Shown piece after piece: positions 24,564 to 60,851 of a DNA stretch of 64,000 nucleotides (position 1 is its first letter; every line of letters starts with the position of its first letter). Source of the stretch: Mobula hypostoma (taxonomy: Eukaryota). The stretch is taken from NCBI RefSeq assembly GCF_963921235.1, contig NC_086101.1, positions 15,686,001 to 15,750,000 of the forward strand, read 5' to 3'. The notes under the pieces are model-generated. The model saw nothing but the letters and a program-made list of their open reading frames with translations, ran no database searches and was not told the origin of the DNA. The position numbers were made by a program, and so were the translations under genes.

Positions 24564-24675
24564 TCAGCACCTTTGTGTGGTGTTGGGTTTTCCAGCGCAT
24601 AGCGCAACACTGCCCCCCGCTGGCCGGCACCCTTTCACTGCAACTCTGTCCTCTACCGACGGGAGTGAAGCACTG
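24564..24675 (-). CDS. NCR3-like copy A, candidate cytoplasmic/terminal exon
   Basis: The polypyrimidine acceptor cttttcttctctctggtccag| (24675) gives TVLHSRR* in phase 1; the alternative tag| (24652) gives KDRVAVKGCRPAGGSVALCAGKPNTTQRC*. The segment is conserved in the paralog at 51782-51873. Confidence 0.45.
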
Positions 24676-25392
24676 CTGGACCAGAGAGAAGAAAAGCACA
24701 TCTCACTTTGTCTCTTTTCAAGGTTTAACAGTTCAAAGTACATTATTATTATCACAGTATATATACCACATGCAACCCTGAGATGGAGATCGTTGCAGGC
24801 AGACACAAAACAAAGAAAAAACACACTAGAATCCACGATAAAAAAAACAAAGACCTTCAGACAAGCAATGTGCAAAAAGAAAAGAATAAACTGCAAATAA
24901 TAAAAATTGACACACAGAACATGAACTGCAGAGTCCCTGAATGTGAGCCCACGGCCAAAGATCCAGTTCAGTGCTGAGAACCTCACGGGGTGGTGAGCTG
25001 AACATCAGTTGGTCTTTTACCATCGACCTTGACACCTTAACTTTTTAAATCTGACTTGTGCATAAATCGGTTAAGCATTGGTTCATTTCCTGCTCTTGGT
25101 CCTGGGGTATGCTGCTTCAATCCGGCCCAAAGTCCACTCCAGCAACGGCTGCTGTGGCCCAGCTGCATTCTTGTGGGTCCGAGTCATTTGGGTGTACTTA
25201 AAGCAGAACTGACATGTTCTTGATTGGTTTTGCTGTCAAAGGTTACGGGGAAGGCAGGAGGACGGGGTCGCGAGGGAAAAGAAAACACCCAATACAGAAT
25301 GGTGGAGCAGACTTGATGGGCCGAATGACCAACTCCTACTATGTCTTATGATCTTAAACTGATCGGAGAGGTAAAAGATCAAATGCTATTAC

Positions 25393-25506
25393 TTTCTGCT
25401 CTGAGGGTTTTGCTATGAAACAGGATGCTGCAGAGCAGGATGCTCCCTTGTATCCCAAAGGCCGCTAACAGGATCACCAGGTGAATCACGATGGCTGTCA
25501 GTTTGC
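25393..25506 (-). CDS. NCR3-like copy A, transmembrane exon
   Basis: ctcccccctcag|(R)KLTAIVIHLVILLAAFGIQGSILLCSILFHSKTLRAE|gtaata; 114 nt, phase 1-1; same length and donor position as in the paralog. Confidence 0.85.
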
Positions 25507-25628
25507 CTGAGGGGGGAGAAACAAGTCAGAACACACAAGCACAAATGGGCCATTTGGCCCTTCGAGACTGATGAAGCACGCAGTGACATGGTAGCCAACC
25601 TGAAAGTCTTTAACCCCACTGGTGAAAT

Positions 25629-26174
25629 CTTTCTTTCTTTATTAGTCTTTTTATTGATTTAAAAGAAGCATAAATACAATCAAGAGGGGAATTATCTCAA
25701 ATATATATATCAGTAACAATACAAACCAAGATTAAGATAGACATTGTCAAAATCATAGATATTGTTAAACCGGTAGAAAATATATAATAAAAAAATGAAA
25801 ACAGCAATTCTCCTCTTGTCAGTTTATGAAGAGAAAAGAAAAAACTTTGAGCTTTAAATTAAGAGAAAAATAACCCCACTACACTATATTTAAAAAAAAA
25901 CAAAAAAAAAAGGGACTGGGCAGTCCATTTTGAGGATACGACCCAAAAAAAAAGAAAAAAACAGACTTTCTGATCAAATCTAAAACTTCGAAAAAAAGAT
26001 TGAAGGAGTAATAAATCAAATTAAATGAAAATATTTGATACAAGGTTGTCAGATTTGCTCAAACTTAAAGGATGTGTGAATTGTCTGACTTCTGATTTTC
26101 TCTAAACTTAAACAGGACATAATAGAGGACAGCCAATGAAAGACTGTAGGTAGATTAGAGTCTTTCCAGTTCAT
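25629..26174 (-). mobile_element. Tx1/L1-clade 3' fragment inserted in the V-TM intron of copy A
   Basis: Encodes WKDSNLPTVFHWLSSIMSCLSLEKIR; flanked by the direct repeat TGGTGAAAT (25620-25628 and 26175-26183); empty site present at ~60965. Confidence 0.8.
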
Positions 26175-26789
26175 TGGTGAAATAATTCCTGTCACTGCCA
26201 CACCCCCTCCTCCCAATTCCAGGACAGAAAGCATAGGGAAGTTGCTCTTCCAATAATTGTATAGGATGACCGAGAGGTGCTAAAATCACATCCAGCGTTG
26301 ATCTTTGAATAACATTTGTCCCAGTCCCACACTAATCCCATTTATTTTCCTATTAATTATACTAATAACTGATCCTCCCCACCTTCCTTTCAAATCCCCC
26401 GAGTTTCTACCATTTCCCAAGGGAGTAATTTACAGAATCAACTAAACCACCAACCCACATGTCTTTGCGATGTGGGAGGAAACCAGAGCACCCCAAGGTG
26501 AGGGTTGGCCACACTGACACAGGAAGAATCCATTGAAAATAGGATAGGACAGAGAGGGAGGAGGACAGAATGTGACCCACTGCCCACCACGTCCCAAGGG
26601 GGAGAGGACAGTGTGTGACCCACTGCCCCACCTGGTCCAAGAGAGGAAGGAGGAGTGTGTGACCCACTGCCACTCTTCTATAATCTGCACACTGAGCCAA
26701 TCATTGTTGATGGGTTGATAAGTATGTGATCTCCAGCCAGTCACCCCAATGTAATTCTTCTTATCTTCAGTCTCCCATCTACAGAGACT

Positions 26790-29270
26790 TGGATGGCTCA
26801 GGGGCAGGAATGTCTACTTAGAGAGCCAGGCTTCAAATGTTTCAGAAAAGACAAGGAAGGAGGCAGAGGAGGAGGGGGCGTGGCATTGTTGATCAGAGAT
26901 AGCGTCATGGTTGCAGAAAAGGAGGAAATCAGGGAGAGATTGTCTACTGAGCCTCTGTGGGCGGAAGTTAGAAACAGGAAGGGGGAAATAACTCTATTGG
27001 GAGTTTTTTTTATCGACCACCCAATAGTAAAAGAGAAAGGTGCAATAATAACAGGTTGTTGTGGTGGGAGATTTTAATTTCCCAAATATTGATTGGCATC
27101 TTCCTAGAGTGAGGGGTTTAGATGGGGTGGAGTTTGTTCAGAAAGGTTTCTTGACACAATATGTAGATAAGCCTACAAGAGGAGAGGCTATACTTGATCT
27201 GGTATTTGGAAGTGAGTAGGAGAGCATTTTGGAGACAGTGATCACAATTCTATCTCCTTTACCATAGCATTGGAGAGGGATAGGAACAGACAAGTTAGGG
27301 AAACATTTAATTGGAGTAAGGGGAAATATGAGGCTATCAGGCAGGAACTTGGAAGCATAAACTGGAAACAGATGTTCTCAGTGAAATGTATGGAAGAAAT
27401 GTGGCAAATGTTCCGGGGATATTTGCGTGGAGTTCTGAGTAGGTACGTTCCAATGAGACATGGAAAGGATGGCAGGGTACAAGATCCATGGTGTACAAAG
27501 GCTGTTGTAAATCTAGTCCAGATGAAAAGAAAAGCTTACAAAAGGTTCAAAAAACTAGGTAATGATATGAATCTAGAAGATTATAAGGCGAGCAAGAAGG
27601 AGCTTAAGAATGAAATTAGGAGAGCCAGAAGGGGACATGAGAAGGCCTTGGTGGTCAGGATTAAGGAAAACCCCAAGGCATTCTACAAGTATGTGAAGAG
27701 CAAGAGGATAAGACGTGAGATAATAGGACCAATTAAGTGTGACAATGGAAAAGTGTGTATGGAACCGGAGGAAATAGTGGGAGTACTTAATGAATACTTT
27801 GCTTCAGTATTCACTGTGGAAAAGGATCTTGGCAATTATAAGGATGACTTGCAGTGGACTAAAATGCTTGAGAATATAGATATTAAGAAACAGGATGTGC
27901 TGGAGCTTTTGGAAAACGTCAAGTTTGATAAGTCACCGGGACCAGATGGGATGTACCCTGGGATTCTGTGGGAGGCAAGGGAAGGAAATTGCTGAGCCTC
28001 TGGCAATGATCTTTGCATATCAATGAGGACAGGAGAGGTTCTGGAGGATTGGAGGGTTACGGATGTTGTTCCCTTATTCAAGAAAAGGAGTAGGTATAGC
28101 CCAGGAAATTATAGGTGAGTGAGTCTTACTTCACTGGCTGATAAGTTGATGGAGAAGATTCTGAGAGGCAGGATTTATGAACATTTGGAGAGGCATAATA
28201 TGATTAGGAATAGTCAGCATGGCTTTGTCAAAGGCAGGTCGTGCCTTACAAACCTGGTTGAATTTTTTGAGGATATGACTAAACACATTGATGATGGTAG
28301 AGCCATAGATGTTGTGTATGTGGATTTTAGCAAAGCACTTGATAAGGTACCCCATGCAAGGCTTATTGAGAAAGTAAGGAGGCATGAGATCCAAGGGGGC
28401 ATTGATTTGTGGATACAGAACTGGGTTGCCACAGAAGGCAAAGAGTGGTTGTAGACATGTCATATTCTGCATGGAGGCCGGTGACCAGTGGTGTGCCTCA
28501 GGGATGTGTTCTGGGACCCGTACTCTTTGTGATTTTTATAAATGACCTGGATGAGGAAGTGGATGGATGGGTTAGTAAATTTGCTGATGACACAAAGGTT
28601 GTGTGTGTTGTGGACAGTGTGGAGGTCTGTCAGAGGTTACAACGGGACATTGATAGGATGCAAAACAGGGCTGAGAAGTGGCTGATGGAGTTCAACCCAG
28701 ATAAGTGTGAGGTGGTTCATTTTGGTAGGTCAAATATGATGGCAGAATATAGCATTAATGGCAAGACTCTTGGCAGTGTGGAGGATCTTGGGGTCCAAGT
28801 CCATAGGACACTCAAAGCTGCTACGCAGGTTGACTCTGTGGTTAGGAAGGCATACGGTGCATTGGACTTCATCAATCGTGGGATTGAATTTAAGAGCCGA
28901 GAGGTAATGTTGCAGCTATATAGGACTCTGGTCAGACCCCATTTGGAGTACTGTGCTCATTTCTAGTCGGCTCACTATAGGAAGGATGTGTAAACCATAG
29001 AAAGGGTGCAGAGGAGATTTACAAGGATGTTGCCTGGATTAGGAAGAATGCCGTATGAGAATAGGTTAAGTGAACTCGACCTTTTCTCTTTGGAGCGATG
29101 AAGGATGAGAGGTGACTTGGTAGAGATGTACAAGATAATGAGAGGCATTGATTGTGTGGATAGTCAGAGGCTTTTCTCCAGGGCTGAAATTGCTAACACG
29201 AGAGTGCATAGTTTTAAGGTGCTTGGAAGTAGGTACAGAGGAGATGTCAGGGGTTAATTTTTTTTTTACG
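26790..29270 (+). mobile_element. CR1 LINE (APE + RT), degraded
   Basis: GGGGVALLIRDS, GRF/GDFNFP, ENPKAFYKYVKSKR, KSPGPDGMYP, QHGFVKGRSCLTNL, RPHLEYC in successive frameshifted ORFs. Confidence 0.93.
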
Positions 29271-29368
29271 CAAAGTGTGGGGAAACCGGACAGGGCTCCA
29301 GAAATAGAAAGTTGATGGGGGTGGGTGGTAATAAGCTCAGTATTGTTTCGGGCTGGGGAACCACTCAC

Positions 29369-29698
29369 GTGTGTGACTCACGGTCAGCCGTACACCCTCT
29401 CCGATTTCCACGCCAATCCCGTCTATCCGTACTTTGCAGTAATACATTCCAGAATCGCTCTCCCTCACGTCCACCAGCTTTATGGAAACTTTGAATGAAT
29501 CCTCCTGGTCAGGCCCAAGGATGCGCCCTGCAAACTCTGCCGTCCCGTTGGAGACTTCGGATGTGTTCCGGTACCAGCTGTAGAACACGGTGTCTCCAGA
29601 GTGATTGGCATTATGGCTACAGACCATGAGGACCGTTTCACCCTCACCTGCAAATATACTGGACTGGCCTTGCGTAACTGTGAAGCTCTTGCTTTTTC
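29369..29698 (-). CDS. NCR3: NKp30/NCR3-like receptor copy A, V-type Ig exon (paralog of a multigene family)
   Basis: cccactgcag|GKSKSFTVTQGQSSIFAGEGETVLMVCSHNANHSGDTVFYSWYRNTSEVSNGTAEFAGRILGPDQEDSFKVSIKLVDVRESDSGMYYCKVRIDGIGVEIGEGVRLTVSHT|gtgagt; 330 nt, phase 1-1. B-strand C, C-strand W and DSGxYYC are present. EVSNGTAEFAGRI and GIGVEIGEGVRL parallel human NKp30 EVRNGTPEFRGRL and GLGVGTGNGTRL as recalled. Confidence 0.88.
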
Positions 29699-30159
29699 CT
29701 GCAGTGGGAAAGGAGAAAGTCAATGCTTCCCATTTGGAAGTTGGCCATTGGGGTGAGAATTCAGGCCCAGTGTTAAAGGCTGGACACATTCAACATTTGA
29801 GATTGTTTGTTGTCAATTGTCAGTACAAGAGTTTAAAGGGGGATGAAATCATTGTTTCTCCAGTTCTGATGCAGCAGTAAAAAGAGACAATAAGCATAAA
29901 AACAAAAAAATATATAAATATACATCCATCCTATAAAACACAATGCACAAGTAACTGTAAAGTGGCAGTGCATGGGAAGGGTGCTGAGGGCTATGGAGAG
30001 GAGTGGCTGATGTGGATGTAGTGGTGGGTTAATGGTGGAGGTGTTGGTCAACCTGGTAACATTGGATGAAGTATCTGGTTTTTCAGTCTGCTCCTTGATG
30101 GTGGGCAGTCTGATGCCAGGGATATGTTCTGTATTTTGAAGAGTTTGGATGACAAGCTG

Positions 30160-30610
30160 TTCATTGGCTTGTCATACGAAGAGTGTTTGATGGCTCTGGG
30201 CCTGTATTCGCTGGAATTTTGAAGAACGAGGGGTGATCTCATTGAAACCAATCGAATGGTGAAAGCCTCAATAGAGTGGATATGGAGAGGATGTTTCCTC
30301 TGGTGGGAGAGTCTAAGATGAGTGGACACAGCCTCAGAAATGAGAGGCATCCTTTTAGAACAGAGATGAGGAGGAATTTCTTTAGCCAGAGAGTGGAGAA
30401 TCTGTGGAATTCTTTGCCACAGGCTCCTGTAGGGGCCAAGTGTTTATGGATATTTAAGGCAGAGGTTGATAGATTCTTGTTTGGTCTGTGCGTGAAGGGA
30501 TATGGGGAGAAGGGAAGAGATTGAGGCTGAGAGGAAAATAGATCAGACATGATGAAATGGCAGATCAGACTCAATGGGCCAAATGGACTAATTCTACATC
30601 TATATCTTAT
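30160..30610 (+). mobile_element. CR1 3' fragment
   Basis: [32 protein letters not shown]. Confidence 0.85.
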
Positions 30611-30619
30611 GGTGTTATT

Positions 30620-31090
30620 TAACTACCTGCTGTAGAGTCATCCTATCCATCACTGTGAGTTTCTGTACCACACAGCGATCCAGCATGTTAGGATGCTCTC
30701 TACTGTGCATGCAAACATGTTCCATAACTTGGGCAATCTGAACTTCCCTCTGCAACTCCATCCTTGCCATCCTCACTGGGAGACCAGAGTCTGTGCAGGT
30801 TGGAAATAACATCACCACCTCGTTGACGATCAACACTGGTGTACCTCAAGGATGCATGCTTGGCCCACTGCTCTACTATCTCTACACTGACAATTGTGTG
30901 GCCAGGCACAGCTCAAATGCTATTTATAAATTTGCTGTCGTCACAATTATTTTTGGCAAAATTTTAGATGGTGATGAGGAGGTGTACAGGAGTGAGAAAG
31001 ACCAGCTGGTTGAGTGGTGTTGCAACAACAACCTTGAATTTAACATCAATGAGACCAAGAAATTGATTGTGTACTTCAGGAAGAGGAGGT
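30620..31090 (+). mobile_element. Rex1/Babar-like RT fragments
   Basis: ORF 30793-31128 LTINTGVPQGCMLGPLLYYLYTDNC...KFAVVT. Confidence 0.7.
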
Positions 31091-33713
31091 TGGTGCTGAT
31101 GACGTCATCGTTCAGAATGGCAGCTTAAATCAATAGCTCCTCTGGAAAAACGCACATTTTGCCCCGTTAATCCATCAAATATAAGATCTTTCGAAAATAT
31201 TTGAATTGATAAGGGGGGCAAGAATGGGGAAGAAGAATGGAGATAAAAAAAGCATCCCTGCGGAGCCCATGGGAGAGAGAGGTACAAAGCGCGGCTCTCC
31301 TACACGTGCGTGTGGCGGCGAGACTGACGCGGGGCCTCCTGCAGGCGAAGCGGCAAATACGATAAGGATTTTGGAAGGGATAAGGGAAGTCCAAAAAGAT
31401 ATAAAACAGCAACTCAATGATATAAAGTCAGAGCTCGCCAATGTCAATCAGAAAATAGCGGTGGCAGAGACTCGAATTGAGAAGGTGGAAGATCGCGTGC
31501 AAAACGTGGAACAGATACTAAGTAAGACGATAAAAATCCTCAACAGGAAATTAAATTGCTTGACCAGGAGGGAAGATCCCGACAGAAAAATATCAGGATT
31601 TATAATGTTCCCGAAGGAGCGCAGGGATTGTCGATGATAGGCTTTGTAGACTTTGCGGGAAGCGCTGGAGACTCCCCCGACTATAGAGATTGAAACTGAG
31701 AGGGCGCATCGTTCGCTCGTCCCGCGGCCCTCCGGAGACAGAGAAGGTAAACCGCGATCCACAGTATTGAAATTCCTTCGATTCAAGAGCAAGGCAGAGA
31801 TTCTACGAAGGGCCTGGGGGAAGAAGAGGGTTTTTTGGAACGGGAAGTTACTATACTTTGATCATGATTATCCCCCGGCAGTCCTACAGAAATGGAAGCA
31901 GTATTCCGAAGCGAAACGAATATTAAAGGAAGAAAAGATTAAATTCCAAACCCCGTACGCTGCTAAACTGAGGGTATTTTACCAAGAAGGGATACGACTA
32001 TATCAGACAGTGGAAGAGGCGACTACAGACATGAAGAACGGAGGACTGCCCATTAGCGTGGTCAGACCGAGGGAAAGTCTGGCTGAGCAGTTATCCCGAT
32101 CTGCTTGGGAAATTGTAAGAGAGCCGAGAAAGCAGGAGACGGGAGCAGGACGAGAGAAGAATATTAGAAAGAGACTGTGAGTTCTCCGAGGACAGCCCTC
32201 ATCTCCTCCAGAAGAGTCATAATGTTTGGCTAACTTTAAAAGTGCTGATAAACTAAACGGAAGCAAAGATAGACGGTGATACACCTATCTCGAGAAATAC
32301 CTATTATAATATGGATGTGATATTACACAATTTTAAAAAATTCATTGATTAATTCCTTTTCCCCCAACTAAGTGAGAATATATACATGGGAGGAATAAAC
32401 AGGGAAATCACTTCTGTGTAATGGACATAGATTTTTTTTACTTACTTTTATAGGTAATGCAGCGGGGGCCCTCAACTCACAGGTAGGAGGGGCTATTCCC
32501 CCATGGCCAGACGTTTCTTCTAGCTCAACCCAGGGTCATCTAGAGACCCCGGCCTTGGAATCACACCTTCATTATCTTTTTTTTATTATTATTCGCGTTT
32601 CTTGGCTCTTATTTGTTCAGGGAGTAGATCAATTCAGTTATATTCTGCAAATTTCAATGATATACTAACAGATAAATACACATGGTTAAGGACAAAGTAA
32701 AATTAATTTCTTGCTGTTGAATCCAGTGAAGCGCAGTAAAATTCTATCAAAAATGAAATAAGGAACAAGCCCATGTAGTATATTTACAGGAAACTCACTT
32801 AAGTGATAATGAGCATGGAAAATTAAAGAGAATGGGCTTTATTAATTTGTTTTGCTCCTCATATAAATCAGGACATAGAAGAGGAGTTGCTATTCTCATC
32901 TCAAGCAGCTAAATTTTGAAGAAGTTTTCGAAATGGGAGATAAACAGGAGAGATATATTCTGGTAAGGGGCAATATAGATGGAAATCCAGTTACTTTATT
33001 GAATATATACACACCCCCAGGAAGTGGTAGTAGTTTCTTCCAGAAAATTACTAATACTATGGTAACGGAAACAGAATGTCTTTTGATATGTGGGGGAGAC
33101 TTAAATTTACAATTACAACCAAAGTTAGACTCTTCCAATAGAAAAACTTATGAAACAAAGTCGTTACATAAGAAAATTAATACACTTTTTGAGGATGTTG
33201 GTGTAATTGATATATGGAGGGACCTTTTCCCCGACTGAAGGGATTACACTCATTATTCTGCCCCCCATTCTGTTTATACAAGAACAGACTATTTCATAAC
33301 ATTTGAAAAAGATAGGGACAAAATAATCACCTGTGGAATTGGGACAATAGATGTAAGTGACCATGCACCTATATATTTATCTGTTGATTTTGACCTACGA
33401 CCAAAGAATACTATTTGGAAACTAAATTCAAGTCTACTCAATGATCCCTATTTTAAGGAACAAATTAAAAAAGAAATTGGTCTTTACTTAGAATTCAGTG
33501 ATAATGGAGAGGTTTCACCTCCCATTCTATGGGATACTCTGAAGGCTGTCTTAAGAGGGAAAATTATAGCGATATCTTCATAAAAGAAAAAAATAAGGAA
33601 TAAAACATTAAAGGAATTACAAAATAAGCTGAAGGAATGAGAAAAAAAACACAAATTGAGTTTGGCACAGGATACACTAGAGGGAATTTAAAAAATAGGG
33701 ATGTTATTAATAG

Positions 33714-33957
33714 CAACACACTTCAAAGTTGCTGGTGAACGCAGCAGGCCAGGCAGCATCTCTAGGAAGAGGTACAGTCGACGTTTCAGGCCGAGACCCT
33801 TCGTCAGGACTAACGTCAGGACGCAGGGTCTCGGCCCGAAACATCACTGTACCTCTTCCTAAAGATGCTGCCTCGCCTGCTGCGTTCACCAGCAACTTTA
33901 ATGTGTGTTGCTTGAATTTCCAACATCTGCAGAACTCCTCGTGTTTGCGTTGAATGA
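33714..33957. mobile_element. Palindromic Penelope-like terminus insertion inside the L1-like element
   Basis: ~100 bp inverted arms (33714-33812 vs ~33815-33910); flanked by the direct repeat TATTAATAG (33705-33713, 33958-33966). Confidence 0.8.
33775..33812 (-). ncRNA. Minimal type I hammerhead ribozyme motif
   Basis: - strand TAGTC-CTGACGA-AGG GTCTCGG CCT-GAAAC-GTC-GACTG has an intact CUGANGA/GAAA core, stem II, palindromic ACGU stem III, GUC cleavage triplet and stem I. Activity is not demonstrable from sequence. Confidence 0.7.
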
Positions 33958-36600: not shown

Positions 36601-36799
36601 ATACAAGCTTGAGTGAACTTTTGTCAGTCACCATGGAAACAACAACTTGCCAAAATATTCTGAAGTGGATGATCTCAAACCAGGAATATGCTCTCAACTC
36701 TTTGAGGCCCCTCTGAACGTAGCTGCCCCAGTTCAAGGGCCAAGGAGGGGGATAGAATTTCCCCACATGGTGGGTAATCTGGAAGACTTCAGAAAGGGT

Positions 36800-37390: not shown

Positions 37391-37399
37391 TATACATTG

Positions 37400-46245: not shown

Positions 46246-46279
<34 letters not shown>

Positions 46280-46760: not shown

Positions 46761-46786
46761 CTCTCTCTCTCTCTCTCACTCACTCA

Positions 46787-46827
<41 letters not shown>
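46761..46827. repeat. Compound microsatellite (CT)n(CACT)n(CA)n
   Basis: Direct inspection. Confidence 0.95.
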
Positions 46828-46829
<2 letters not shown>

Positions 46830-47779: not shown

Positions 47780-50680
47780 AAATACACAGGTTAGAAGATT
47801 TGGTCTTGCTTGCCCATTGTGCAGTGCAGGCGGGATGGCAGATATGGCAGTGGAATGCTCCTCCTGTGGGATGTGGGAATTCACGGATCCTGACAGTCTC
47901 CCTGATGACTGCACCTGTGGGAAGCGCAGCCAACTCCAGCTCATGAAAACCCGTATTAGGGAGCTGGAGCTTGAGTTGGATGAACTTAGAACATAAGAAA
48001 TAGGAACAGGAGATAGGCCCTGTCGAGCCTGCCCCACCATTCAGAAAGATCACGGCTGATCTGACCATGGACTCATCTCCACCTACCTGCCTTTTGCCCA
48101 TAACCCTTAATTCCTGTTTCACCTGCAAACCAACCTTTTGTGATTTATGCACAAGTTCCACCGCACAGCAGAACGCAGCATATTTTTAACCATTTAAATA
48201 ATAATCTGCTCTTTCGTCTTCCAAAGTGGAAAAAGCCTCTACTGTCACTTCTGCCATTTCTTTCAGTACCCTGGGATGCATTCCATCAGGATCTATCTTC
48301 AGGCCCACAGGTCTGCTCAGCACTACCTCTTTAATGATAGCTACTGTATCATCCAGGAGGCAAAGCATTTGATAGATACAACTTTTGAGCAGATGGTTAC
48401 ACTCGGAATGCAGAATTCAGGGAGTAGCCGGGTGAACATCGAGAGAGGTTAAGCGAGAAGGAAGTCAGTGCAGGGTCCCCCTGTAGCTGTTCCTCTCAGA
48501 AACGGATATTCTCCTTTAGATTGTGCTGAGGGGGATGACCTATCTGGGCATAGCATCAGCAGCCAGACCAAGACACTGTGATCAGCTCTGAGCCTCAGAA
48601 GAATAGGGTGAAGTCATGCGGAGCAAGAGTCATCGGGGACTTGATAGTTAGGGGGACAGATAGGCGATTCTGCGGCAGCAAAAGAGACGCCAGGATAGTG
48701 CGTTGCCTCTCCCGGGAGCAGAAGAGGGGTTGAGGTCCTGCACAGTAAGTTTAGGGAGTTAGGAAGGAAGCTGATGAGCAGGACCTCCAAGGTGGTGATA
48801 TCCGGATTACTCCCAGTGCCATGAGCTAGGGAAGGTCAGAACAGGAAGATAGCGCAGGTGAATGAGTGGCTGAGGGTTTGGTGCAGAGGGCAGGGTTTCG
48901 AGTTCTAGGATCATTGTAATCTTTTCTGGGGAAGGGGTGACCTGTACAAGTGGGATGGGTCGCACCTGAACTGGAGGGGAACCAATATCCTGGGAGGGAG
49001 GTTTGCTAATGCTATTGGGGAGGATTTAAACTAGATTTGCAGGGGGGTTGGAAGCAAAGTGAAGAGGCAGAGGATGGGGTGGTTAGCGCACAGGTAGAGA
49101 CAGCTTGTAGGAAGTTTGTGAGGAAGGATCAGCAGATGATAGAGCAAAGATGCACTCAGCCATATAGTTTGAGATGTGTCTATTTTAATGAAAGGAGTAT
49201 CAGAAACAAGGTGAGTGAACATAGAGCGTGGATCAATACGTGAACTATGACGTTGTGGCTATTGCACAGACTTGGATGTCTCAGGGGCAGGAATGGCTGC
49301 TGATTGTGCCAGGGTTAGATGTTTCAAAAAGGACAGGGAAGGAGGCAAAAGATGTGGGGGCATGGCACTTCTAATCAGAGATAGTATAACGGCTTCAGAA
49401 AAGGAGGAGGTCATGGAGGGATTGTCTATTGTGGGTGTAAGTCAGAAACAGGAAGGGTGCAATAACTCTACTGTGTGTTTTTATAGACCCCCCCCCCCCC
49501 CCCCAGTAGCAACAGAGACATCGAATACCAGATAGGGAGACAGATTCTGGAACGGTGCAACAATAATAGGGTTGTTGTGATGGTCGATTTTAACTTTCCT
49601 AATATTGACTGGCATCTCCTTAGAGCAAGGGGTTTAGATGGGGTGGGGTTTAGATGGGGTGGAGCTTGTTAGGTGTGTTCAGGAGGGTTTCCTGACGCAA
49701 TATGTAGATAAGCCAACTAGATGAGAGCCTGTACTTGATCTGGTATGGGGAAGAGAACCTGGTTAGGTGTCAGGTCTCTCAGTGGGAGAGCATTTTGGAG
49801 ATAGTGATCACAACTCTATCACCTTTACCATAACCCTGGAGAGGGATAGGAGCAGACAATTAGGGAAAACATTTAATTGGGGTAGGGGGAAATATGATAC
49901 TATTAGACAGGAACTTGGGAACATAAATTGGGAGCAGATGTTCTCAGGGAAAGAAGATAATAAGAATAGCCCTTAAATCGGCGGTGGAGTTATAGGGGCA
50001 CCATCACGACGATGTTTCCGTAGCAAGTTATTCTTGTTTTTACCAGGCCAAGCTGCTAGCTCGACGCTCAACCGGACTTGGATTCGAATTCGGGAACCTT
50101 CACTCCGGAGTCCGGTGCTGATATTATTGCACCACCAAGTGGGACTTCTCAGGGAAATGCACAGCAGAAATGTGGCAAATGTTCAGGAACATTTGCATGG
50201 TATCCAGCATAAGTATGTTCCAAGGAGGCAGGGAAAGGATGGTAATGTAAAAGATCCATAGTGTGCAAAGGATGTAGAAAATCTAGTCAAGAAGAAAAGA
50301 AAAGCTTATGAAAGGTTAGAGAAACTGGGTACTGTTAGAGCTCTAGAAAATTACAAGGGTGCCCGGAAGGAGCTTAATAATGGAATTAGGAGAGCCAGAA
50401 GGGGCCATGAGAAGGCCTTGATGAGCAGATTAAAAAAAAACAAGGGATTCTAAAAGTATGTGAAGAGCAAGAGGATGAGCTGTGTGAGAATAGGACTAGT
50501 CAGGTGCGATAGTGGAAACATCTGCATGGAGTCAGAGGAGGTAGCGGAGGTACTTAATGAATACTTTGCTTCAGTATTCACCAGGACCGTGGCAATTGTA
50601 GGGATAACTTACAGCAGAAGGAATGCTTGCGTGTATAGACATTAAGAAAGAGGATGTGCTGGAACCGTTGAAAGGTATTT
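47780..50680 (+). mobile_element. CR1 5' part (ORF1 Zn finger + esterase, APE), degraded, with nested inverted CR1 pieces at ~47985-48350
   Basis: MAVECSSCGMWEF...CTCGKRSQLQLMKTRIRELELELDEL; RVIGDLIVRG..RRFCG; GGMALLIRDS; DHNSITF. Confidence 0.8.
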
Positions 50681-51781
50681 CCATAGATGCTGCCTGACCT
50701 GCTGAGTTGCTCCAGCATTTTGTGTGTGTTGCACAGTTTTATGGCACTGCAGTAATATTGGCCATATTTTAATTTGCTCTTTATTTCATTTAAATACCCT
50801 TTGTAATTTGGGGACCGCTTCCACTAACACCTCCGCTCCATCTGCCAGAAGTGGAACTTCCAGGTGGCCAAACATTTTAATTCCATTTCCCATTTTAGGT
50901 CCAACATGTCGGTCGATGATGAGCAGCACCTTATATTCCATGTAGGTGGTCTCCAACCTGATTCCCTCAGTAAAATGGTAGTTTGTCCTTTTCCCATGTT
51001 TTTTCTATTTCCATAAAACATTGTCTAATTGGGGCAAAATGGTCCTGATGTGGTCCAACTAAGCAGAATTCACTACATGTAATGCAGTATTGTATTGAAA
51101 TATAATGTTAATGCATATAAGAATAATATGCATATATAATAATATCATACATATTATTTGCACCGTTTCTACTGACAGAAGGATAAAGGCGTGTTATTGG
51201 CACCTTAAAACCTGTTTCTCCAGGCGGATGGGGCTCGCCAGCCATGGTTGGCAGCTCATTCAGGAAAAAGTAAAACTCTGATCTCAAACCTCCGCTGCCT
51301 TGCCCTCTACCCACTCATAGAGAAGGCTTCGGGAATAAACCCAGAGGGAAAAATCTAGAGCTGGAGTCCCGAAGGCATTCCACTATCGAGCTGACAGATT
51401 TCTGGTACCAAACTGAGTTCTATGCTGACTGGCAACTCCTGCGATGTTTCTGGTACCAAACTGTATCGGCCTCTGCCGTTCCTTTGGATTCATCAGATGC
51501 ATGGAGAGGGGGAGCTTGCTGCATGGGCAACAGCTTGCTCTCTATATTGTACTGCCCTGGTTTGCTTATCTAGATAGCTAGGATGCATTATCCATGGTCA
51601 ACTCTGTCTGATGGAGGCCTCAACTCAACTCAAAGTCCATCCCAAAGGGTGATGCAGAGGGGCAGCTTTCCTCTCATGCAGATGGTCAAGTGGGCACTTC
51701 AGACCCGATGAAGGGTCTCCACCTGAGACACTGACTGCCCATTTCCCTCCACAGGTTCTACCTGACCCAGTGAGAGGTCCT

Positions 51782-51873
51782 TCAGCACCTTTGTGTGGTG
51801 TTGGGTTTTCCAGCGCATAGCGCAACACTGACCCCTGCTGGCCGGCACCCTTTCACTGCAACTCTGTCCTCTA
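51782..51873 (-). CDS. NCR3-like copy B, candidate cytoplasmic/terminal exon
   Basis: Paralog of 24564-24675. Tandem acceptors cag|tag| (51873/51870) give (I)EDRV... or (K)DRVAVKGCRPAGVSVALCAGKPNTTQRC* in phase 1. Confidence 0.4.
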
Positions 51874-52439
51874 CTGACGGACCAGAGGGAAGAAAAGAAC
51901 ATCTCACTTTGTCTCTTTTCAAGGTTTAACAGTTCAAAGTACTTTATTATTATCACAGTATATATACCCATATGCAACCCTGAGATGGAGATTACTGCAG
52001 GCAGCCACAAAACAAAAAAAAAGCACGGTAGAATCCATGATAAAAAGATCCTCACAACAAAGGCATTCAAACTTCCACAGTGCGAGGAAAGAACACATTG
52101 TGCAAAACAGTAAAAAAAAAGTAACAGATAGAACATGAACTGCAGAGTCCCTGGAAGTGAGTCTACGGCCACAGAGCCAGTTCAGTGCTGAGACAAGTAC
52201 ACTGAACTGAGTATTGAGTTGAACACCTCTTTGTCCTTTGCCCTCAGCCTCCACACTTTAATCTTTTAAATCCCGTTCGGCTCTTACGTCGGCTAAACAT
52301 TTGTTTCATTTTTCGCTGCTGGGCCTGGGGTCTGCTACTTCAGTCCAGCCCGCAGTCTGCTCCAGCCGTGGCTGCTGCAGTCGTACCTGCATTCCTGAGA
52401 GTCCAGCTTGCTGAATCCTTCAGGATACCGCAATAATGC

Positions 52440-53072
52440 TACAGATGGTACAGTGTACAGGAGATAAATACGGCAGCTAGTGCAGTGGTGTCACAGAACA
52501 ACCTGGCACCCAAATCTCAGTAAGACCAAAGAGATGATTGTGGACTTCAGAAAGGATAAGATGAAGGAACACAAACCAATCGTCATTGAGCGATCAGAAG
52601 TGGAGAGAGTGAACAATTTCAAGCTCCTGGGTGTCAAGATCTCTGAATATCTAGTCTGGTCCCAACACATAGATGTAGTTATAAAGAAGGCAAGACAGCG
52701 GCTATATTTCATTAGGAGTTTGAAGAGGTTTGGTTTGTCAACTAAAACACTTGAAAACTTCTAAGGATGTATGGTGGAAAGCATTCTGGCAGGCTGCATC
52801 ACTGTCAGGTATGGGGGTGGGGGTGGAGGTGGCTACCGCACAGAACCGAAATAAGCTTCACAAAGTTGTAAAATTAGTCAGCTCCATCTAGGGAACAAGC
52901 TTCCATAGTACCCAAGACACCTTCAAGATGCGGTGCCTCAGAAAGGCAACACCCATTATTCAGGACCCCCATCACCCAGGGCATGCTCTCTGTCTCATTG
53001 TTACCATCAAGAAGGAGGTACAGAAACCTAAAGAGACGCACTCAGCAATTCAGGAACAACTTCTTCCCTCTG
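52440..53072 (+). mobile_element. Rex1/Babar-like 3' fragment (continues after 54008)
   Basis: LNLSKTKEMIVDFRK...ERVNNFKLLGVKI...KKARQRLYF. Confidence 0.8.
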
Positions 53073-54008
53073 CCATAGAAACCATAGAAACTACAGCACA
53101 GAAACAGGCCTTTTGGCCCTTCTTGGCTGTGCCGAACCATTTTCTGCCCAGTCCCACTGACCTGCACACGGACCATATCCCTCCATACACCTCCCATCCA
53201 TGTATCTGTCCAATTTATTCTTAAATGTTAAAAACGAACCCGCATTTACCACCTCATCTGGCAGCTCATTCCATACTCCCACCACTCTCTGTGTGAAGAA
53301 GCCCCCTCTAATGTTCCCTTTAAATTTTTCCCCCCTCACCCTTAACCTATGTCCTCTGGTTTTTTTCTCCCCTTGCCTCAGTGGAAAAAGCCTGCTTGCA
53401 TTCACTCTATCTATACCCATCATAATTTTATATACCTCTATCAAATCTCCCCTCAATCTTCTACGCTCCAGGGAATAAAGTCCTAATCTATTCAACCTTT
53501 CTCTGTAACTGAGTTTCTCAAGTCCCGGCAACATCCTTGTAAACCTTCTCTGCACTCTTTCAACCTTATTCATATCCTTCCTGTAATTTGGTGACCAAAA
53601 CTGAACATAATACTCCAGATTCGGCCTCACCAATGCCTTATACAACCTCATCATAACATTCCAGCTCTTATACTCAATACTTTGATTAATAAAGGCCAAT
53701 GTACCAAAAGCTCTCTTTACGACCCTATCTACCTGTGATGCCACTTTTAGGGAATTTTGTATCTGTATTCCCAGATCCCTCTGTTCTACTGCACTCCTCA
53801 GTGCCTTACCATTAACCCTGTATGTTCTACCTTGGTTTGTCCTTCCAACGTGCAATACCTCACACTTGTCTGTATTAAACTCCATCTGCCATTTTACAGC
53901 CCATTTTTTCCAGCTGGTCCAAGTCCCTCTGCGGGCTCTGAAAAGCTTCCTCACTGTCTACTACACCTCCAATCTTTGTATCATCAGCAAATTTGCTGAT
54001 CCAATTCC
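53073..54008 (-). mobile_element. Young 5'-truncated CR1 with an uninterrupted C-terminal ORF
   Basis: ORF 53091-53954 has 287 aa without stops (WQMEFNTDKCEV, RPNLEYYVQFWSP, RRRLRGDLIEVYKI); (TTTCTATGG)n tail. Confidence 0.92.
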
Positions 54009-54096
54009 TAAATGAACATTGAACCCATGAACACTACCTCACTTTTAAAAGATATATATTATTTCCATTTTTGCACTATTTTAATCTTTTCAATAC

Positions 54097-54098
54097 AT

Positions 54099-54132
<34 letters not shown>
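54097..54132. repeat. (CA)n(TA)n microsatellite
   Basis: Direct inspection. Confidence 0.9.
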
Positions 54133-54334
54133 TTACTGTTATTTATTCACTTATTGTTTCTTTCTATATTATTATGTATTACATTGAACTACTGCTGCTA
54201 AGTTAATAAATTTCATAACACCTGATTCAAAGACGCAGCTCCCAAAGGGAAATTACAGGCTTCAGATTGCACTGTTCGTAGTCCAGAAAACATTTATTTA
54301 ATAGAATAGTTTTGTTTACATGCAAAAGTCTGCA

Positions 54335-55470
54335 GATGCTGGAAATCCAAAGCACCCCACACACAAAATGCTGGAGGAACACAGCAAATCAGGCGACACC
54401 TATGGAAATGAAGTTGATATTTTGGCCGAGACCCTTCTTCAGGATTGGAAAAGAAGGGGGAAGATGCCAGAATAAGAAGTTTAAGGGGGGTGGGAGGGGA
54501 GGAAGCTGGCTAGAAGGTGATAGGGGAAGGCAGGTGGGTTGGAAAGATAAAGTGCTGGACGAGAAGGAATCTGATAGGAGAGGAGGGTGGACCATAGGGA
54601 AAGGGAAGAGGAGCGGAGCAAGGGGGAAGTGATAGGCAGGTGAGAAGATGTAAAAGGCTAGAGTGGGGATAGAAGAAGAGGGAAGGTGGGGAGGGGGTTA
54701 TCAGAAGGAGCAATCAATACTTATTCCATTTGGTTGGAGGCTACCCAAATGGAATATATTGTGTTGCTACTCCACCCAGAGGGTGGCTTCATCTTGGCAC
54801 AAGAGGAGGCCATGGACCAATATCTCGGAATGGGAATGGGAATTGGAATTAAAATCTTAGTTCACTGGGAAGTTCCACTTTTGGTGGATGGAGTGGAGGT
54901 GCTTAACAAATTGCCTCCACCCCCCAATTTACAACGGGGTCTCACCAATGTAGAGGAGATCACTTCGGAAGAACCGGACACAATAGACAACCCCAACCGA
55001 TTTGCAGGGGAAGTCTTGCCTCACCTGGAAAGACTGTTTGGGGCCCTAAACAGAAGTGAGGGAGGAGGTGAATAGGCAAGTGTACACTTTAGCCGCTAAC
55101 AGAGATAAGTGCTGGGAGGAAGATTACTGGTGAGGGATGAACAGACAAGGGAACTGCAGATGGAGTGATCCCTGTGGAGGTAAGGATATGTTTAGAGGTC
55201 GGGTCTCTTTGGAGATGGTGAATCTGTTTAGGATCTCATTGAAGATGGTGAATATGTTTACTGGTAGGATCCCATTGGGAGATGGCGGATATGTTTAATG
55301 ATAGGATCTCGTTGGAGATGACGGATATATTCAGTGTTGGGATCCTGTTGAAGATGGCAGATATGTTTACTGGTAGGATTCCATTGAAGATGATGGATAT
55401 GTTTAGTGCTGGGATCTTGCTGGAGATGGTGGATATGTCCAGTGGTAGGATCCCTTTGTAGATGGCGGAA
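54335..55470 (-). mobile_element. Penelope-like element 3' portion (terminus, GIY-YIG fragment, tandem-amplified 36-bp unit)
   Basis: Degenerate hammerhead at ~54410-54445; antisense GIY-YIG-like sequence; ORF 55258-55602 carries a 12-aa repeat HLQRDPTTKHI. Confidence 0.7.
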
Positions 55471-57049
55471 GTTAGTTTTGTTTATTGCCCACAAAATATC
55501 GCTTTGTCTCACCAGTAACATCATGGAACCTGAGATGGGGCAGACAGGCAGAGAAGGAAGTAGAAAAGTGGCTTTAATATACAAAACACTGCAGGTACTC
55601 ATCCAATCACCACAACACGGTGGTTTAGATTTAATGAGTCATAGAGGACAGTGCCAGGTCCTAGAAGGTTCTAAGATCCGGAATCAAGGTTCACCTATGG
55701 TGAGAATGGACTATTACTGTTTCTGGTCAAGGCCATTCACAAGATTTGAAAGGTAGAAGGTAGAGGGGATGTGGTTAATATATCCCTGTTATGTTTCAGT
55801 CTCTGACACCATTCCCACTCTCTGCCCCATCCCTGTTATGTGGAGAATAGTTAACTTGTCGGCCAAAAGCCGCTTCCATCGTGTCGGACAATGAACGGCC
55901 TGTTTGAGGTATGAAGCAGCTTTTTCCCATTGGCTGCCTTGTGTGCCAGGTAACCAGTGTTCGGTGTCAGGCAACAAGTTTCTGTTTGTTGAATATTTAG
56001 TTTTGCAGTTTGTGTAACTTGGGGACTTAGATCTTTCACTGTTTGTAAATAAATAATTAATATGCTTATTTGTAGTCAGTGTCTTCTACCTGACTCACCA
56101 AATCCATAAACCCATACACCCCCCTCCCATCTGCGGATCACCCCCCTCACCTGCCAGCACTTGCTCCATCTTTATACATTTGGCTATCTCCCCTCTAGTT
56201 TCCAGTGCAGAGGAAGGGTCTCAACCAGAGACTTTGACTCTCCATTTCCTTCCACAGATATTTCCTGACACACTGAGTTCCTCCAGCATTGTGTGTGCTG
56301 TTCCAGATTCCAGCCTCAGCCCGAGTATGTGTCTCTGGGATGGCTATAGAGAGTATGATTCCCCTATAGGTTTATTATGCCAGCAATCCCACACTTGACT
56401 AGAGAGCTTGGTTAATCTGATGCTCTGTTAATTCGGGGAGAGTAACCGAGGTGGAAGCTGAAATAAGCACAGAGACATAAACTCAGGCCATTGACAGATT
56501 TCTTTCCTTGAAGACGTGAAGCAGTTGTGAACAATTTGATGCCATTGGGGGTTCAAAGTTCAATCAAAGGAACAGAAACTGGAATCTTTATCATATTCAT
56601 GACCCGACTCCTGACAGCACGTTTGAGGACCTGCTTCTCTCCCAGTATTCCTCACGACCTGTTGGTTCATGGGCCCATCTTCCTACTGAAAACACAGAGG
56701 AGCCAATTTAATTGTGGGCCGAAGGGCCTTTACCATGCTGTACTATTCTAATTCTGTTAAGAGGAGTGGCTCGACAGTTCGGAGGAAAGAACCAACTTCT
56801 CTGTAGTGGCAAGCTACAGGAGGAGGATATTCAGCCTATCTAGCCTGTACTGGCTCTTGCAAAAGCGATCCAGCTTATCCCACTGCTCCACTCTCAGCTC
56901 ATTGACCTTCAGATGCTCTTTCAGCTTACTTCTGCTCGCTGTGACTTAACCTAATCCCAGGTTCGAATAACTCACTAAGTGAAAAAGCTTCCCCTTTTGT
57001 CTCCTGAGGTCAGAGAAAAGGTTCTTTGGCCCATCGAATTCGTGCGACC

Positions 57050-57250
57050 AATCAGACTGAACCCATTCCTGTTTAACCTCCTAGTCCCCATTTAACCCCA
57101 TTCCATTTAACTCCCAGTCCCTATTTAACCCAATTCCTGTTTAATCCCTTAATGCCCATTTTACCCCATTACTATTTAACCCCCGGTCTCCATTTACCCC
57201 CAGTCCCATTTAACTCCTAGTCCCCATTTAATCCCATTCCTGTTTAAGCC
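57050..57250. repeat. ~17-19 bp degenerate minisatellite
   Basis: Recurring 'cccattcctgtttaacc' / 'cccagtccccatttaacc'. Confidence 0.7.
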
Positions 57251-57269
57251 CCTCAGTCAAGCTCCTATG

Positions 57270-57745
57270 CTCCGTCCGCCAGAAAAATACAGTGGCCACC
57301 CATTTTAATTCCGCTTCCCATTCCCATTCCGATATGTCTATCCATGACCTCTTCTACTGTCATGATGAGGCCACACTCAGGTTGGAGGAACAGTGCCTTA
57401 TATTCCGTCTGGGTAGCCTTCAACTTGATGGCATGAACATTGATTTCTCGAACTTCTGGTAATGCGTTCCCCCCCCCACCCCACTCAGCATTTCCCATCC
57501 CCATTTCCCCCTCTAACCTTCTCTCCTTGCCCACCTATTGCCTCCCTCTGGTGCTCCTGCCCCCTTCTGTCACTTTCACCAATCAACTTCCCAGCTCTTT
57601 ACTTCATCCTTCTCCCTTCAGGCTTCACCCTATTACCTTGTCTTTCTCTCCCCCACCCCCTACCGTTTAAATCTACTACTCAGCTTTTTCTGTCCAGTTC
57701 TGCAGAAGGGTTTCGTCCCAAAATATCGACTGTACTCTCACAAAA
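57270..57745 (+). mobile_element. Penelope-like element 3' end (GIY-YIG C-terminus + pLTR-like tail)
   Basis: 57292-57462 reads VATHFNSASHSHSDMSIHDLFYCHDEATLRLEEQCLIFRLGSLQLDGMNIDFSNFW*, resembling PLE endonuclease C-termini; degenerate hammerhead at ~57700-57735. Confidence 0.75.
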
Positions 57746-58269
57746 TTCAAAAAGCACAGAGATGTGCAGTTGAACCTTTTCTAAGCAAAAATGAACCAGT
57801 TATCTATCTCCTCCCTCATCGCGAGCAATCTCCACTTATGACATCCAGTCTCTCTCACTCCACTCTTTTATTCTCTCTGCCCATCCCCTCCTCACAGCAA
57901 TCCAATCTAAGCTATATTTTCAGTTTTTCCCAGTTCTATTGAAAACCTACGATTCCAGAACCTTAACTCTGCTTGATTCTCTGGAGGTGCTGCCTGACCT
58001 GCTGAATATCCCAGCGTTCTCTGATTTTATTTTAGACTTCCAGCATCTGCAGGTTTTTATTTTGCTTTACAACTTACCATCCCGGGTCCTTCAATCCAAA
58101 TAGAGTGAAGTTAAATCAGCTGTAAAATTAATTATGTGCATATTAGTATGAACACTGGCAGGTCCCTCCCACTCACTGTCCGTGGGAGCCCTAGTTCCAC
58201 TCCCGTTACTCATGGCTCTCCTACAGCCCAAACATTAGTCTCAGAACTTCTACAGTCCTTTCCCATCTT

Positions 58270-59240
58270 ACATAGGTGACCCATTGACATTGGATATGAC
58301 AGCACAGAAACAGGTCCTTTGTGTTGACCTGTTTTCTGTCAAGTCCCGTTGACCCGCACCTGGAACTTCACTCTCAATGCCCCTCCCATCCATGTACTGA
58401 TCCAAATTTCTCTTAAATGTTGCAATTGAACCCACATCCAGCACTTCCCACTGGAAGCTCGTTGCATACTCACACCATCCACTGAGTGAAGAAGTTCCCC
58501 TTAAATATTTCACCTTTAACCCTAAGCCAATGACCTTCATTTCTCGTCTCACCTAACATCTGGGGAAGAAATATAAAAGAGATCCACAAGAGATTCCACA
58601 GATGCTGGAAATCCAGAGTAACAGATACATTTGCCATCTTATTAACACACAAAACTGTACTTGATGTGATGAGACCTCAGCTCAATTCAAAATTGTGGTC
58701 TAACCACGGTTTAATAGAGCTGCAACATTACTTCACGGTCCTTGAACTCAGTCTCCCAATTAGTGAAGGCCAACACACCATACGCCTTTTTCACGGCTCA
58801 ATCAACCTGCACGGCAACTTTGAGGGATCTATGGATGTGGGCTCCAAGGTCCCTCTATTCCTCCACATTGCTAAGAAATCTGCCATTCACCCTGTATTCT
58901 TCCTTCAAATTAAGACTTCCTAAGTGAATCACTTCCCACTTTTCAGGATAGGATTCCACGTGCCATTCTCAGCCCAGCTCTGCATCCTATCAATGTCCTG
59001 TTGTATTCCTTGCCACCATTTCACACTATCCACAACTCCACAACCTTAATGAAATCTACAAGCTTACTAACACACCCTCCCACTTCTACATCTGAATCAT
59101 TTCTAAAAATTATGAAGAGCAGCGGTCCCAAAACAGATCACTACAGAGCACCGCAGTTCGCCATCCTCCAGGCAGAATAGGCTCCATCTACAACTACCCT
59201 CTGCCTTCTACAGGCAAGCAAATTCTGAATCCCCTCTGTG
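58270..59240 (-). mobile_element. CR1 3'/RT fragments, degraded
   Basis: Antisense of 'gggaagtgattcacttaggaag', 'gaaaaaggcgtatggtgtgttggcc', 'gacttgacagaaaacagg'. Confidence 0.6.
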
Positions 59241-60129
59241 GGCAAGACTTCTCCTTCGCTGGCACTGTAACAGTGTTACAGGAGCCACAATGTCACCGCG
59301 CCACCCCACTATTCTACCTTCACTGTCCCTGATGAGCATTTCTTTTTGCACTACGATGCATTGCACTGCTCTCCTTGCACCAGGCTGTTGTCTTGTCCTC
59401 ATGGCTGTATTTGATGTTGTATTTAATATTACCACGTAGACCAGTGAGTTTCAGACAGGGAAGGTATTTCTTCGCATCTTGGAGCGTCTGACAATAAATT
59501 TATCCAGCCTAGTCATCAGAGAAATCTGCAGAATTAGGCACAATTACAATTAGATGCTGACTGACAGGGTCTTGTGCCTCTTGATCGCACTGATGTTCAA
59601 TACTGGGACCCACCAACTCGAGACAGTCCGGTATTCACGGGTGTCCTTCGTGTAAATTTTCACCCACATTACTAACCTTTGTGCACAGAGGAGAGGCTTA
59701 AACTCTGAATGTACTTCATCGCCATGACAGTATCGCTGGATTTCGAGCGTGGAGTAGAGTCCTGGACTCGGAGTGCACCTTCTCAACTATCCACATCACT
59801 GGGCGCAGAGTGGAGTCCTGACCTCTACCTCCTTCATGTCCCTGTCTATGTCCATACACCCTAATCTAACCCCCAACTCCATTGACTGTCCTGAAAACCA
59901 TCCCTACAAACTTAAAAATACAACTAAGTCTGGGCCATGATCTCAAGAGAGACCACAGCTTGCATCATCATGACCAAAGATTTATGGGCCAAACACTGGT
60001 TAATGGGACCAGACATCTCAGTCAGCAGAGATGAGTTGGGCTGAAGGGCCTGTGTCTGTGCTGTTGACTCACAGATCTACTACCTCAATTGCCCTGCTCA
60101 TCTACACATGCTGTTGAACCCCTTGGGCT

Positions 60130-60690
60130 TTCCAAATGTTCCTCACCTTTAAGGATATAAAGCATTAGTCAAAGAACATTGGCAGTGTTGTGTGCAGTTT
60201 TGGGCTCCATATCTAAGAAACAATGTGCTGGCATTGGGGAGGATCCAGAGGAGAATGACAAAACTGATTTGGGAATGAAAGAGTAAATGTATGAGGATTG
60301 CTAGCTCTGGGATGTACTCGCTGGAGTTGAGAAGGATGGTGGGGAGGGATCTTACTGACACTTATCACATACTGAAAGGCCTAAACAGAGTGTACGTGGA
60401 GAGGATATTTCCAATATTGAGAGAGTCTAGGAGTCACAGCTCAGATTAGATGGAGATAAGGAGGAGTTTCTTTAGCCAGAGGGTGGTGAATCTGTGGAAT
60501 TCATGTCATAGATGACTGTGGAAGCCAAGTCATTGGGTATACTTAAAACAAAGGTTGATATGTTCTTGATTAGTTTTGGTGTCAAAGGTTATGGAGGAAG
60601 GCAGGAGAATTGGGTTGTGAGGGGAAAAATCTCTCAATATGGAATGGCAGAGCAAACTCAATGGGCTGAATGTCTGAATCCCTCTATCTT
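60130..60690 (+). mobile_element. CR1 3' fragment
   Basis: 'gtgtgcagttttgggctccatatctaagaaa...agccagagggtggtgaatctgtggaattc'. Confidence 0.75.
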
Positions 60691-60737
60691 TTCTGATCCC
60701 AAACTGGCGATAGAGGTAAAGGATTCAGTCTCCTTAC

Positions 60738-60851
60738 TTTTTGCACTGCAGATTTTTCTACGAAATATGATGCTGATGAGTAGGATGCTCCCTTGTATTC
60801 CAAAGGCCGTTAACAGGATCACCAGGAGAATCGTGACAGGTTTCAGTTTGC
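60738..60851 (-). CDS. NCR3-like copy B, transmembrane exon
   Basis: ttctcccccacag|xKLKPVTILLVILLTAFGIQGSILLISIIFRRKICSAK|gtaagg; 114 nt, phase 1-1; clear paralog of 25393-25506. Confidence 0.85.

Follow-up and report, generated by a model that had tools for sequence, protein, structure and literature searches.

Histidine and leucine forms of a transmembrane exon in an NKp30-like receptor family of the ray Mobula hypostoma

The window analysed here, 64,000 nucleotides of the devil ray Mobula hypostoma (NCBI RefSeq assembly GCF_963921235.1, contig NC_086101.1, positions 15,686,001 to 15,750,000 of the forward strand), contains on its minus strand two paralogous exons that encode transmembrane (TM) segments of a receptor family related to human NKp30. 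One exon (copy A) has a histidine where the other (copy B) has a leucine, and an intact V exon stands upstream of copy A. Comparisons with relatives in other rays suggest that the exons represent two old types of membrane anchor, one with histidine and a stub tail and the other with leucine and a long tail. An earlier note on this DNA, made from the letters alone, had proposed a pair of activating and non-activating or inhibitory receptors. Positions are counted from the first letter of the window.

Two paralogous transmembrane exons

25393-25506, minus strand: TM exon A, His type, phase 1-1; His codon CAC at 25481-25483; donor GTAATA
60738-60851, minus strand: TM exon B, Leu type, phase 1-1; Leu codon CTC at 60826-60828; donor AAA/GTAAGG intact

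Both 24-residue TM peptides reported in the earlier note, one with His and one with Leu, were recovered letter-perfect in a six-frame search of the window, at 25433-25504 (A) and 60778-60849 (B) of the minus strand. Each exon has a strong acceptor, with a pyrimidine tract followed by CAG/G, and a GT directly 3' of it. The exons are identical at 93 of 114 nucleotides and their homology extends into both flanks (79% identity over 457 bp, E 1e-107, self-blastn), as was also found when 550 bp around each peptide were aligned. Homology of exon and flanks at this E value excludes chance, so that the relationship between A and B is one of paralogy. The His and Leu codons differ by a single base.

Sixteen codons differ between the two exons, 14 of them changing the residue and two being silent. 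The differences are few in the TM core LVILL..FGIQGSILL, where 3 of 48 nucleotides in 16 codons are changed, compared with a flank divergence of 15% upstream and 26% downstream. This low divergence relative to the flanks suggests that the core has been under constraint. The hydrophobic core of copy B is free of charged residues and its sole charges are juxtamembrane lysines, in agreement with the earlier description of this copy.

The V exon beside copy A

29369-29698, minus strand: V exon of cassette A, upstream of TM exon A; VJ-type V-set, 330 nucleotides, phase 1-1, intact over 109 codons

The V exon lies in a stop-to-stop open reading frame (29340-29789, minus strand) that matches the Pfam V-set family (E 1.1e-12), and it keeps canonical splice sites and an open frame. 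A J-like motif, G-x-G-x-x-L-x-V, is encoded inside the same single exon as the V domain. The top sequence matches in PDB are four chains of human NKp30 (E 1.2-1.7e-9). A Foldseek search with the AlphaFold model of the exon (predicted local distance difference test score, pLDDT, 90.8) likewise placed NKp30 at ranks 1-4, with TM-scores of 0.78-0.80 and 30-32% identity. The V domain upstream of copy A is NKp30-like by sequence and by fold. Several relatives have been automatically named SIRP-beta-like by NCBI. Membership in the SIRP family was considered and rejected: SIRPalpha is a second-tier fold match with about 20% identity and is absent among the 60 PDB sequence matches shown.

A hidden Markov model (HMM) of the family V domain, run over all 64 kb, found this single V exon (E 1.7e-42), the next best hit having an E value of 3.9. 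No V exon for copy B was found by this model within the window, and that exon is expected to lie beyond position 64000. The idea of two NKp30-like paralogs stands as regards the paralogous TM exons and the NKp30-like V exon at copy A; the second V exon that it implies is not among the contents of the 64 kb.

Relatives in rays and the two types of anchor

Relatives were gathered by an exhaustive HMMER search with the V domain and by word-index searches aimed at the anchor. The ray relatives are modelled with 2-5 tandem V exons in genes of 30-57 kb. P0002, P0003 and P0156 are RefSeq models of M. hypostoma itself, and none is identical to the window exons.

The counterpart of copy A was found in the red stingray Hemitrygon akajei (P0158, XP_072892315), in a model with the order leader-V1-V1-V2-anchor. 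It has His at the copy A position, shares the anchor core and ends 12 residues past the span, and its TM segment and tail are 78% identical to those of copy A over 41 amino acids, reaching the stop. P0158 differs in being a complete modelled gene with a leader and three V domains, in retaining the stop-transfer sequence RRK and in carrying an additional His, four residues upstream of the first. P0158 is itself a gene prediction, and no experimental study of it was found.

Leu-type anchors similar to copy B are present in P0003 (M. hypostoma, XP_062903900), P0156 (M. hypostoma, LOC134346461) and P0157 (Hypanus sabinus, LOC132393824). P0003 and P0157 have the order leader-V1-V2-anchor-tail and are 79% and 67% identical, respectively, to copy B in the TM segment; anchor identities to copy B were computed over 39-45 amino acids. 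Their tails of about 160 residues contain IYxPM, I[QH]YAVI, which is an immunoreceptor tyrosine-based inhibitory motif (ITIM), and YDELN. P0156 lacks the last two of these motifs and has another residue in place of the first tail tyrosine. Tails in the three Leu-type relatives span 91-163 residues, in contrast to copy B, for which such a tail is absent in the window.

The anchor core LVILLxAFGIQGSILL with phase 1-1, a feature of the ray family, is present in both copies. At the site that distinguishes the two copies, P0158 agrees with copy A in having His, and P0003, P0156 and P0157 agree with copy B in having Leu. The residues around this site follow the same division. An A-type signature (T3, I5, V6, H8, LRAE and a 12-residue tail) is common to copy A and P0158, and a B-type signature (K3, V5, T6, L8 and RRK) to copy B, P0003, P0156 and P0157, with a long tail in the complete relatives. 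Judged from these sequences, the split between a His form with a stub tail and a Leu form with a long tail is real at the family level and predates the divergence of devil ray and stingray.

The V domains are grouped differently. The V domain of cassette A carries the V2-type exon signature of the ray multi-V family, KSKSFTVTQGQ... to ...RLTVSHT, and is 91-94% identical to the V2 domains of the M. hypostoma paralogs (92-93% for the Leu-type P0003 and P0156) and 90% identical to that of P0158; over the V2 domains of P0003, P0156, P0157 and P0158 the identity is about 83-94%. Between the two stingray copies the identity is 92%, so that V2 domains group by lineage. Anchors that split by type across species, combined with ectodomains that are alike within a lineage, would be the usual signature of paired receptors, here read from few informative sites. 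The proposed dichotomy of activating and inhibitory receptors agrees with the relatives, in which His goes with a stub tail and Leu with an ITIM-like tail. Its application to copy B as an inhibitory receptor is unsupported, as no tail exon was found for this copy in the window.

Similar ectodomains joined either to an ITIM tail or to a stub tail with a polar TM residue are known from SIRPalpha/beta and KIR2DL/2DS. These pairs differ from the ray family in that the polar residue is Lys or Arg, and the SIRP fold is only the second-best match to the V domain of cassette A. In classical paired receptors the activating form is derived from the inhibitory form.

A further M. hypostoma model, P0002 (XP_062903898), combines a leader with one V1 and four V2 domains, lacks an anchor and has WLTAN as its last residues. 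It may be a secreted multi-V form or a model that misses its anchor exon, as may hold for the exons of the window.

Position and chemistry of the histidine

The His of copy A and P0158 is preceded by 4-5 hydrophobic residues (AIVI and HIVI, respectively) and separated by 21 apolar residues from the first charge on the cytoplasmic side. The corresponding count is 19 residues after the Arg in NCR3, the gene for NKp30, of possum, naked mole-rat and guinea pig, and 12-21 after the Arg or Lys in nurse-shark NCR3 and in relatives found in a sawshark, two frogs and two other sharks. It is a fair statement that the His lies about where NKp30 has its Arg. The Arg in the upper half of the TM segment that is typical of NKp30/NCR3 is itself absent in both copies, which have His (A) and Leu (B) at a comparable position.

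Human NKp30 (PDB 3NOI, 3PV6, 6YJP) resembles the ray family in its single-exon VJ-type V domain, which is the best match by sequence and fold, and it resembles the His form in its short tail and in the polar residue that its TM segment carries close to the outer end. The rays differ in chaining 2-5 V domains, in using His instead of Arg and in having also long tails with tyrosine motifs. Nurse shark NCR3 (QTT61904, P0089) and the shark relatives P0015, P0060 and P0155 share with the rays an NKp30-like V domain and with the His form a very short tail and a basic residue, located 14-17 residues above the inner end of the anchor. This residue is Lys or Arg, and the anchor cores cannot be aligned with the ray LVILL..FGIQGSILL.

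When aligned by eye, the ray anchor core instead matches shark ITIM-type anchors (A-x-G-x-x-G), which carry Leu or Phe at the His position. Because of this, the His is most likely derived from a Leu-like hydrophobic residue of an inhibitory-type anchor, as far as the alignment can tell. Replacement of an ancestral Arg by His was considered in view of the resemblance between HIAIR in bamboo shark and HIVIH in stingray, and was rejected since the ray core aligns with the Leu/Phe anchors of the ITIM type.

A mid-span polar residue beside the G-x-x-G motif is Glu in horn-shark ITIM types (P0004, P0032) and Gln in rays. It occurs in brake-type forms as well as in forms with a stub tail. In copy A this Gln lies 11 residues past the His and thus on the same face of the helix.

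The closest functional parallel is CD89 (FcalphaRI), in which a basic residue at the top of the helix meets the aspartate pair of FcRgamma. Exchange of this Arg for His retained FcRgamma assembly, surface expression and function, while a hydrophobic substitute failed (PMC13107469, a 2026 review). According to the same review, an Arg-Asp-Asp contact at the top of the helix is assumed for NKp30 as well (PMC13107469). The His of CD89 differs from that of the rays in being an engineered mutant, in another receptor family and in mammals. By this analogy, coupling of the ray receptor to an adaptor through its His is plausible.

Literature searches found no natural TM His in activating receptors. Chicken CHIR-A had been mentioned in the earlier note as a precedent, and full-text searches gave no support for this. 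CHIR-A uses Arg.

The His form might also be a real receptor that is not coupled to an adaptor, such as a tail-less decoy or co-receptor in which the His lies at the membrane interface or takes part in dimerisation with the mid-span Gln. The hydrophobic residues after the His would suffice for a full span, and His is a weak base at a site where the natural receptors in the review use Arg or Lys (PMC13107469). Mid-span Gln or Glu is found in the His, Leu and shark ITIM types alike, and polar contacts alone do not mean activation. Several observations make such an uncoupled form unlikely: the stretch just before the His (AIVI) is of higher hydrophobicity than its Leu-type equivalent (PVTI) and would draw the His into the bilayer, the Arg to His exchange in CD89 is functional (PMC13107469), and His and a stub tail occur together in two ray families.

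Ends and missing parts of the cassettes

25379-25392, minus strand: continuation of TM exon A past its GT; four codons and a TGA stop (25379-25381)

If this GT is left unspliced, copy A has a tail of 12 residues, as long as that of P0158. Farther downstream copy A has another stop in frame, at a place where copy B stays open, with the frame judged by eye. Read-through past TM exon B would add 25 residues without tyrosine before a stop at 60658-60660.

No leader or V1-type exon (AEKFVVIQ...) was found anywhere in the window with tblastn, leader patterns and the V-domain HMM, which includes the 34 kb of upstream sequence of copy A that the window contains. TM exon B lies between the V exon and any further upstream exons of copy A, and the leader and V1 exons may be situated beyond position 64000. 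A leader candidate at 58637, with a Met, a hydrophobic run and a phase-1 donor, lies within a fragment of a long interspersed nuclear element (LINE) and was rejected. A tail-like match at 21676-21738 (DGEKLPCPDVQ) was also rejected, as it belongs to a relic of a Tc1/mariner transposase at about 21400-22110 on the minus strand.

Several points weigh against functional paired receptors with a coupled His form. The GT after TM exon A is intact, hence the short tail presupposes either read-through or a terminal exon that escaped the search. The stop-transfer RRK, which all other members keep, is weakened to HSK in copy A, and this together with the 14 residue-changing codons among 16 possibly reflects relaxed constraint. 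Neither the 31 kb that separate TM exon B from the V exon nor the rest of the window contain a leader, V1-type or plausible signal-peptide exon, and a tail exon for copy B is absent in all frames of the window (tblastn with word size 2; tail HMM in six frames, best E about 8). Neither the TM exons nor the V exon occur in any public protein model found, the searches giving only paralogs and orthologs. Conservation of the His is based on two sequences. Finally, His is mostly uncharged in a membrane and could, with 21 hydrophobic residues following it, be located at the interface.

Alternatively, the V exon with TM exon A, and TM exon B, may be left-overs of segmental duplication in a transposon-rich receptor cluster, neither belonging to a working gene in this ray, with the His as a tolerated neutral substitution. 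The lack of leader, V1 and tail exons in 64 kb, introns loaded with LINE, Tc1 and minisatellite sequence, the absence from protein models, and the HSK and codon changes of copy A are all consistent with such relics. However, all three exons retain canonical splice sites and an open frame, the V exon, intact throughout, is 91-94% identical to expressed-looking paralogs, conservation of the TM core far exceeds that of its flanks, and the stingray gene model shares the His-type end. We regard relics as possible, if on balance somewhat unlikely. Because no tail exon is present in the window, copy B as found here cannot, on its sequence, be called inhibitory; it would be a tail-less form or a relic. 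Copy A may likewise be a fragment, and one or both cassettes may be incomplete.

Flanking sequences, repeats and neighbouring gene

26172-26764, minus strand: intron block upstream of TM exon A, common to B at 60962-61326 and 63797-64000; contains a degenerate 45-bp minisatellite
60962-64000, minus strand: intron upstream of TM exon B, enlarged by a LINE fragment and by a 45-bp minisatellite (61210-61574)
24415-25180, minus strand: block Z of cassette A, directly 3' of TM exon A; homologous to 51633-52404
51633-52404, minus strand: block Z of cassette B; about 8 kb of sequence derived from transposons lies between it and TM exon B

The two cassettes also share non-coding sequence. The common intron block is found 0.7-1.3 kb upstream of exon A; upstream of exon B it is stretched and runs off the end of the window at 64000. 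The core of block Z is about 95% identical between the cassettes, far above the TM exons (82%) and their flanks. Block Z has no Pfam match and a 17-bp indel disrupts any common reading frame; it could be a conserved 3' untranslated region, a gene-conversion tract or a young repeat. The first AATAAA 3' of TM exon A is at 24113. Position 24564, with which the earlier note let the feature begin, is the stop of an open reading frame in this conserved and non-coding-looking block and marks no supported exon. A last exon ending at 24564 was considered and rejected, as its acceptor is in the wrong phase, 17 bp of it are deleted in copy B and it has no match in the family.

That block Z follows each TM exon might indicate one gene with two alternative ends, in which leader and V exons beyond 64000 join TM exon B or bypass it for the V exon and anchor of cassette A; Leu-anchored and His-anchored isoforms would then come from a single locus. 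Skipping preserves the frame, since every V and TM exon has phase 1-1. Both cassettes are on the same strand with no start exon between them, and the number of tandem V exons and the gene lengths modelled in relatives would accommodate such an arrangement. Yet no family member is documented with such a switch and the stingray His-type model is a self-contained gene, which leaves a single gene with two ends very unlikely.

The 45-bp minisatellite at 61210-61574 consists of eight copies that are 97% alike, and it is also present at 26551-26671 and 63678-63907. Degenerate copies occupy the matching place upstream of TM exon A. A LINE fragment at 27216-28963 on the plus strand (RVT_1, E 4e-15) lies in the intron that separates the V exon from TM exon A, and related pieces were found at 1470-2908, 49265-50663, 53094-53957 and 58691-59232. 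The only neighbouring gene seen is represented by a RING exon of the TRAF2/3/5 type at 4865-5092 on the plus strand. It is convergent with the receptor cassettes, and the receptor parts can therefore not extend beyond about 18 kb.

Proposed relationship and its implications

The explanation we favour, with moderate confidence as a whole, is an old split into trigger-like and brake-like receptors in which the His form is paired with an adaptor. The minus strand would carry the 3' parts of two old paralogous cassettes from a ray multi-V family of NKp30-like receptors. Cassette A would consist of the V exon and the His-type TM exon, with a stop four codons past the exon, and would be the counterpart of the stingray receptor with His and a 12-residue tail. 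Cassette B would be represented by its Leu-type TM exon only, a type that is followed, in relatives that are complete, by a long tail containing three conserved tyrosine motifs. The His form would most likely have arisen when the inhibitory type lost its tail and a single substitution turned CTC into CAC. It is predicted to reach the cell surface and to signal by pairing the His with the aspartate pair of a dimer of the FcRgamma or CD3zeta type, in the same manner as the Arg of NKp30 and CD89. The B copy of the window may have lost the inhibitory tail, or never had it, and would then be tail-less or a relic.

A more specific version of this explanation is tentative and in our view rather doubtful. 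It would have a natural trigger receptor of the ray NKp30 family, retained from a time before devil rays and stingrays diverged, using His as its sole intramembrane contact, with coupling possibly weaker or tunable by pH, and perhaps encoded at the same locus as the Leu form by a choice between terminal cassettes.

Paired brake and trigger receptors are a recurring design in innate immunity, with trigger forms defined by a membrane Lys or Arg that recruits an adaptor with an immunoreceptor tyrosine-based activation motif. To our knowledge, His has so far worked in this role only as the engineered mutant of CD89. If the cassettes are relics, they would be a commonplace outcome of duplicating exons within a receptor cluster rich in transposons. 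Should the ray His form be expressed and coupled to an adaptor, a natural His would widen the Lys/Arg rule and would be the first natural adaptor contact of the Arg-Asp-Asp type built with His. The split into trigger and brake forms in the NKp30 lineage would then be dated before the divergence of two ray families. The CAC and CTC codons offer a clean and cheap test case of one codon. From the sequences compared, the His appears to be an unusual variant within a trigger-like and brake-like split of ray receptors, and the new element would be the histidine variant and not the pairing.

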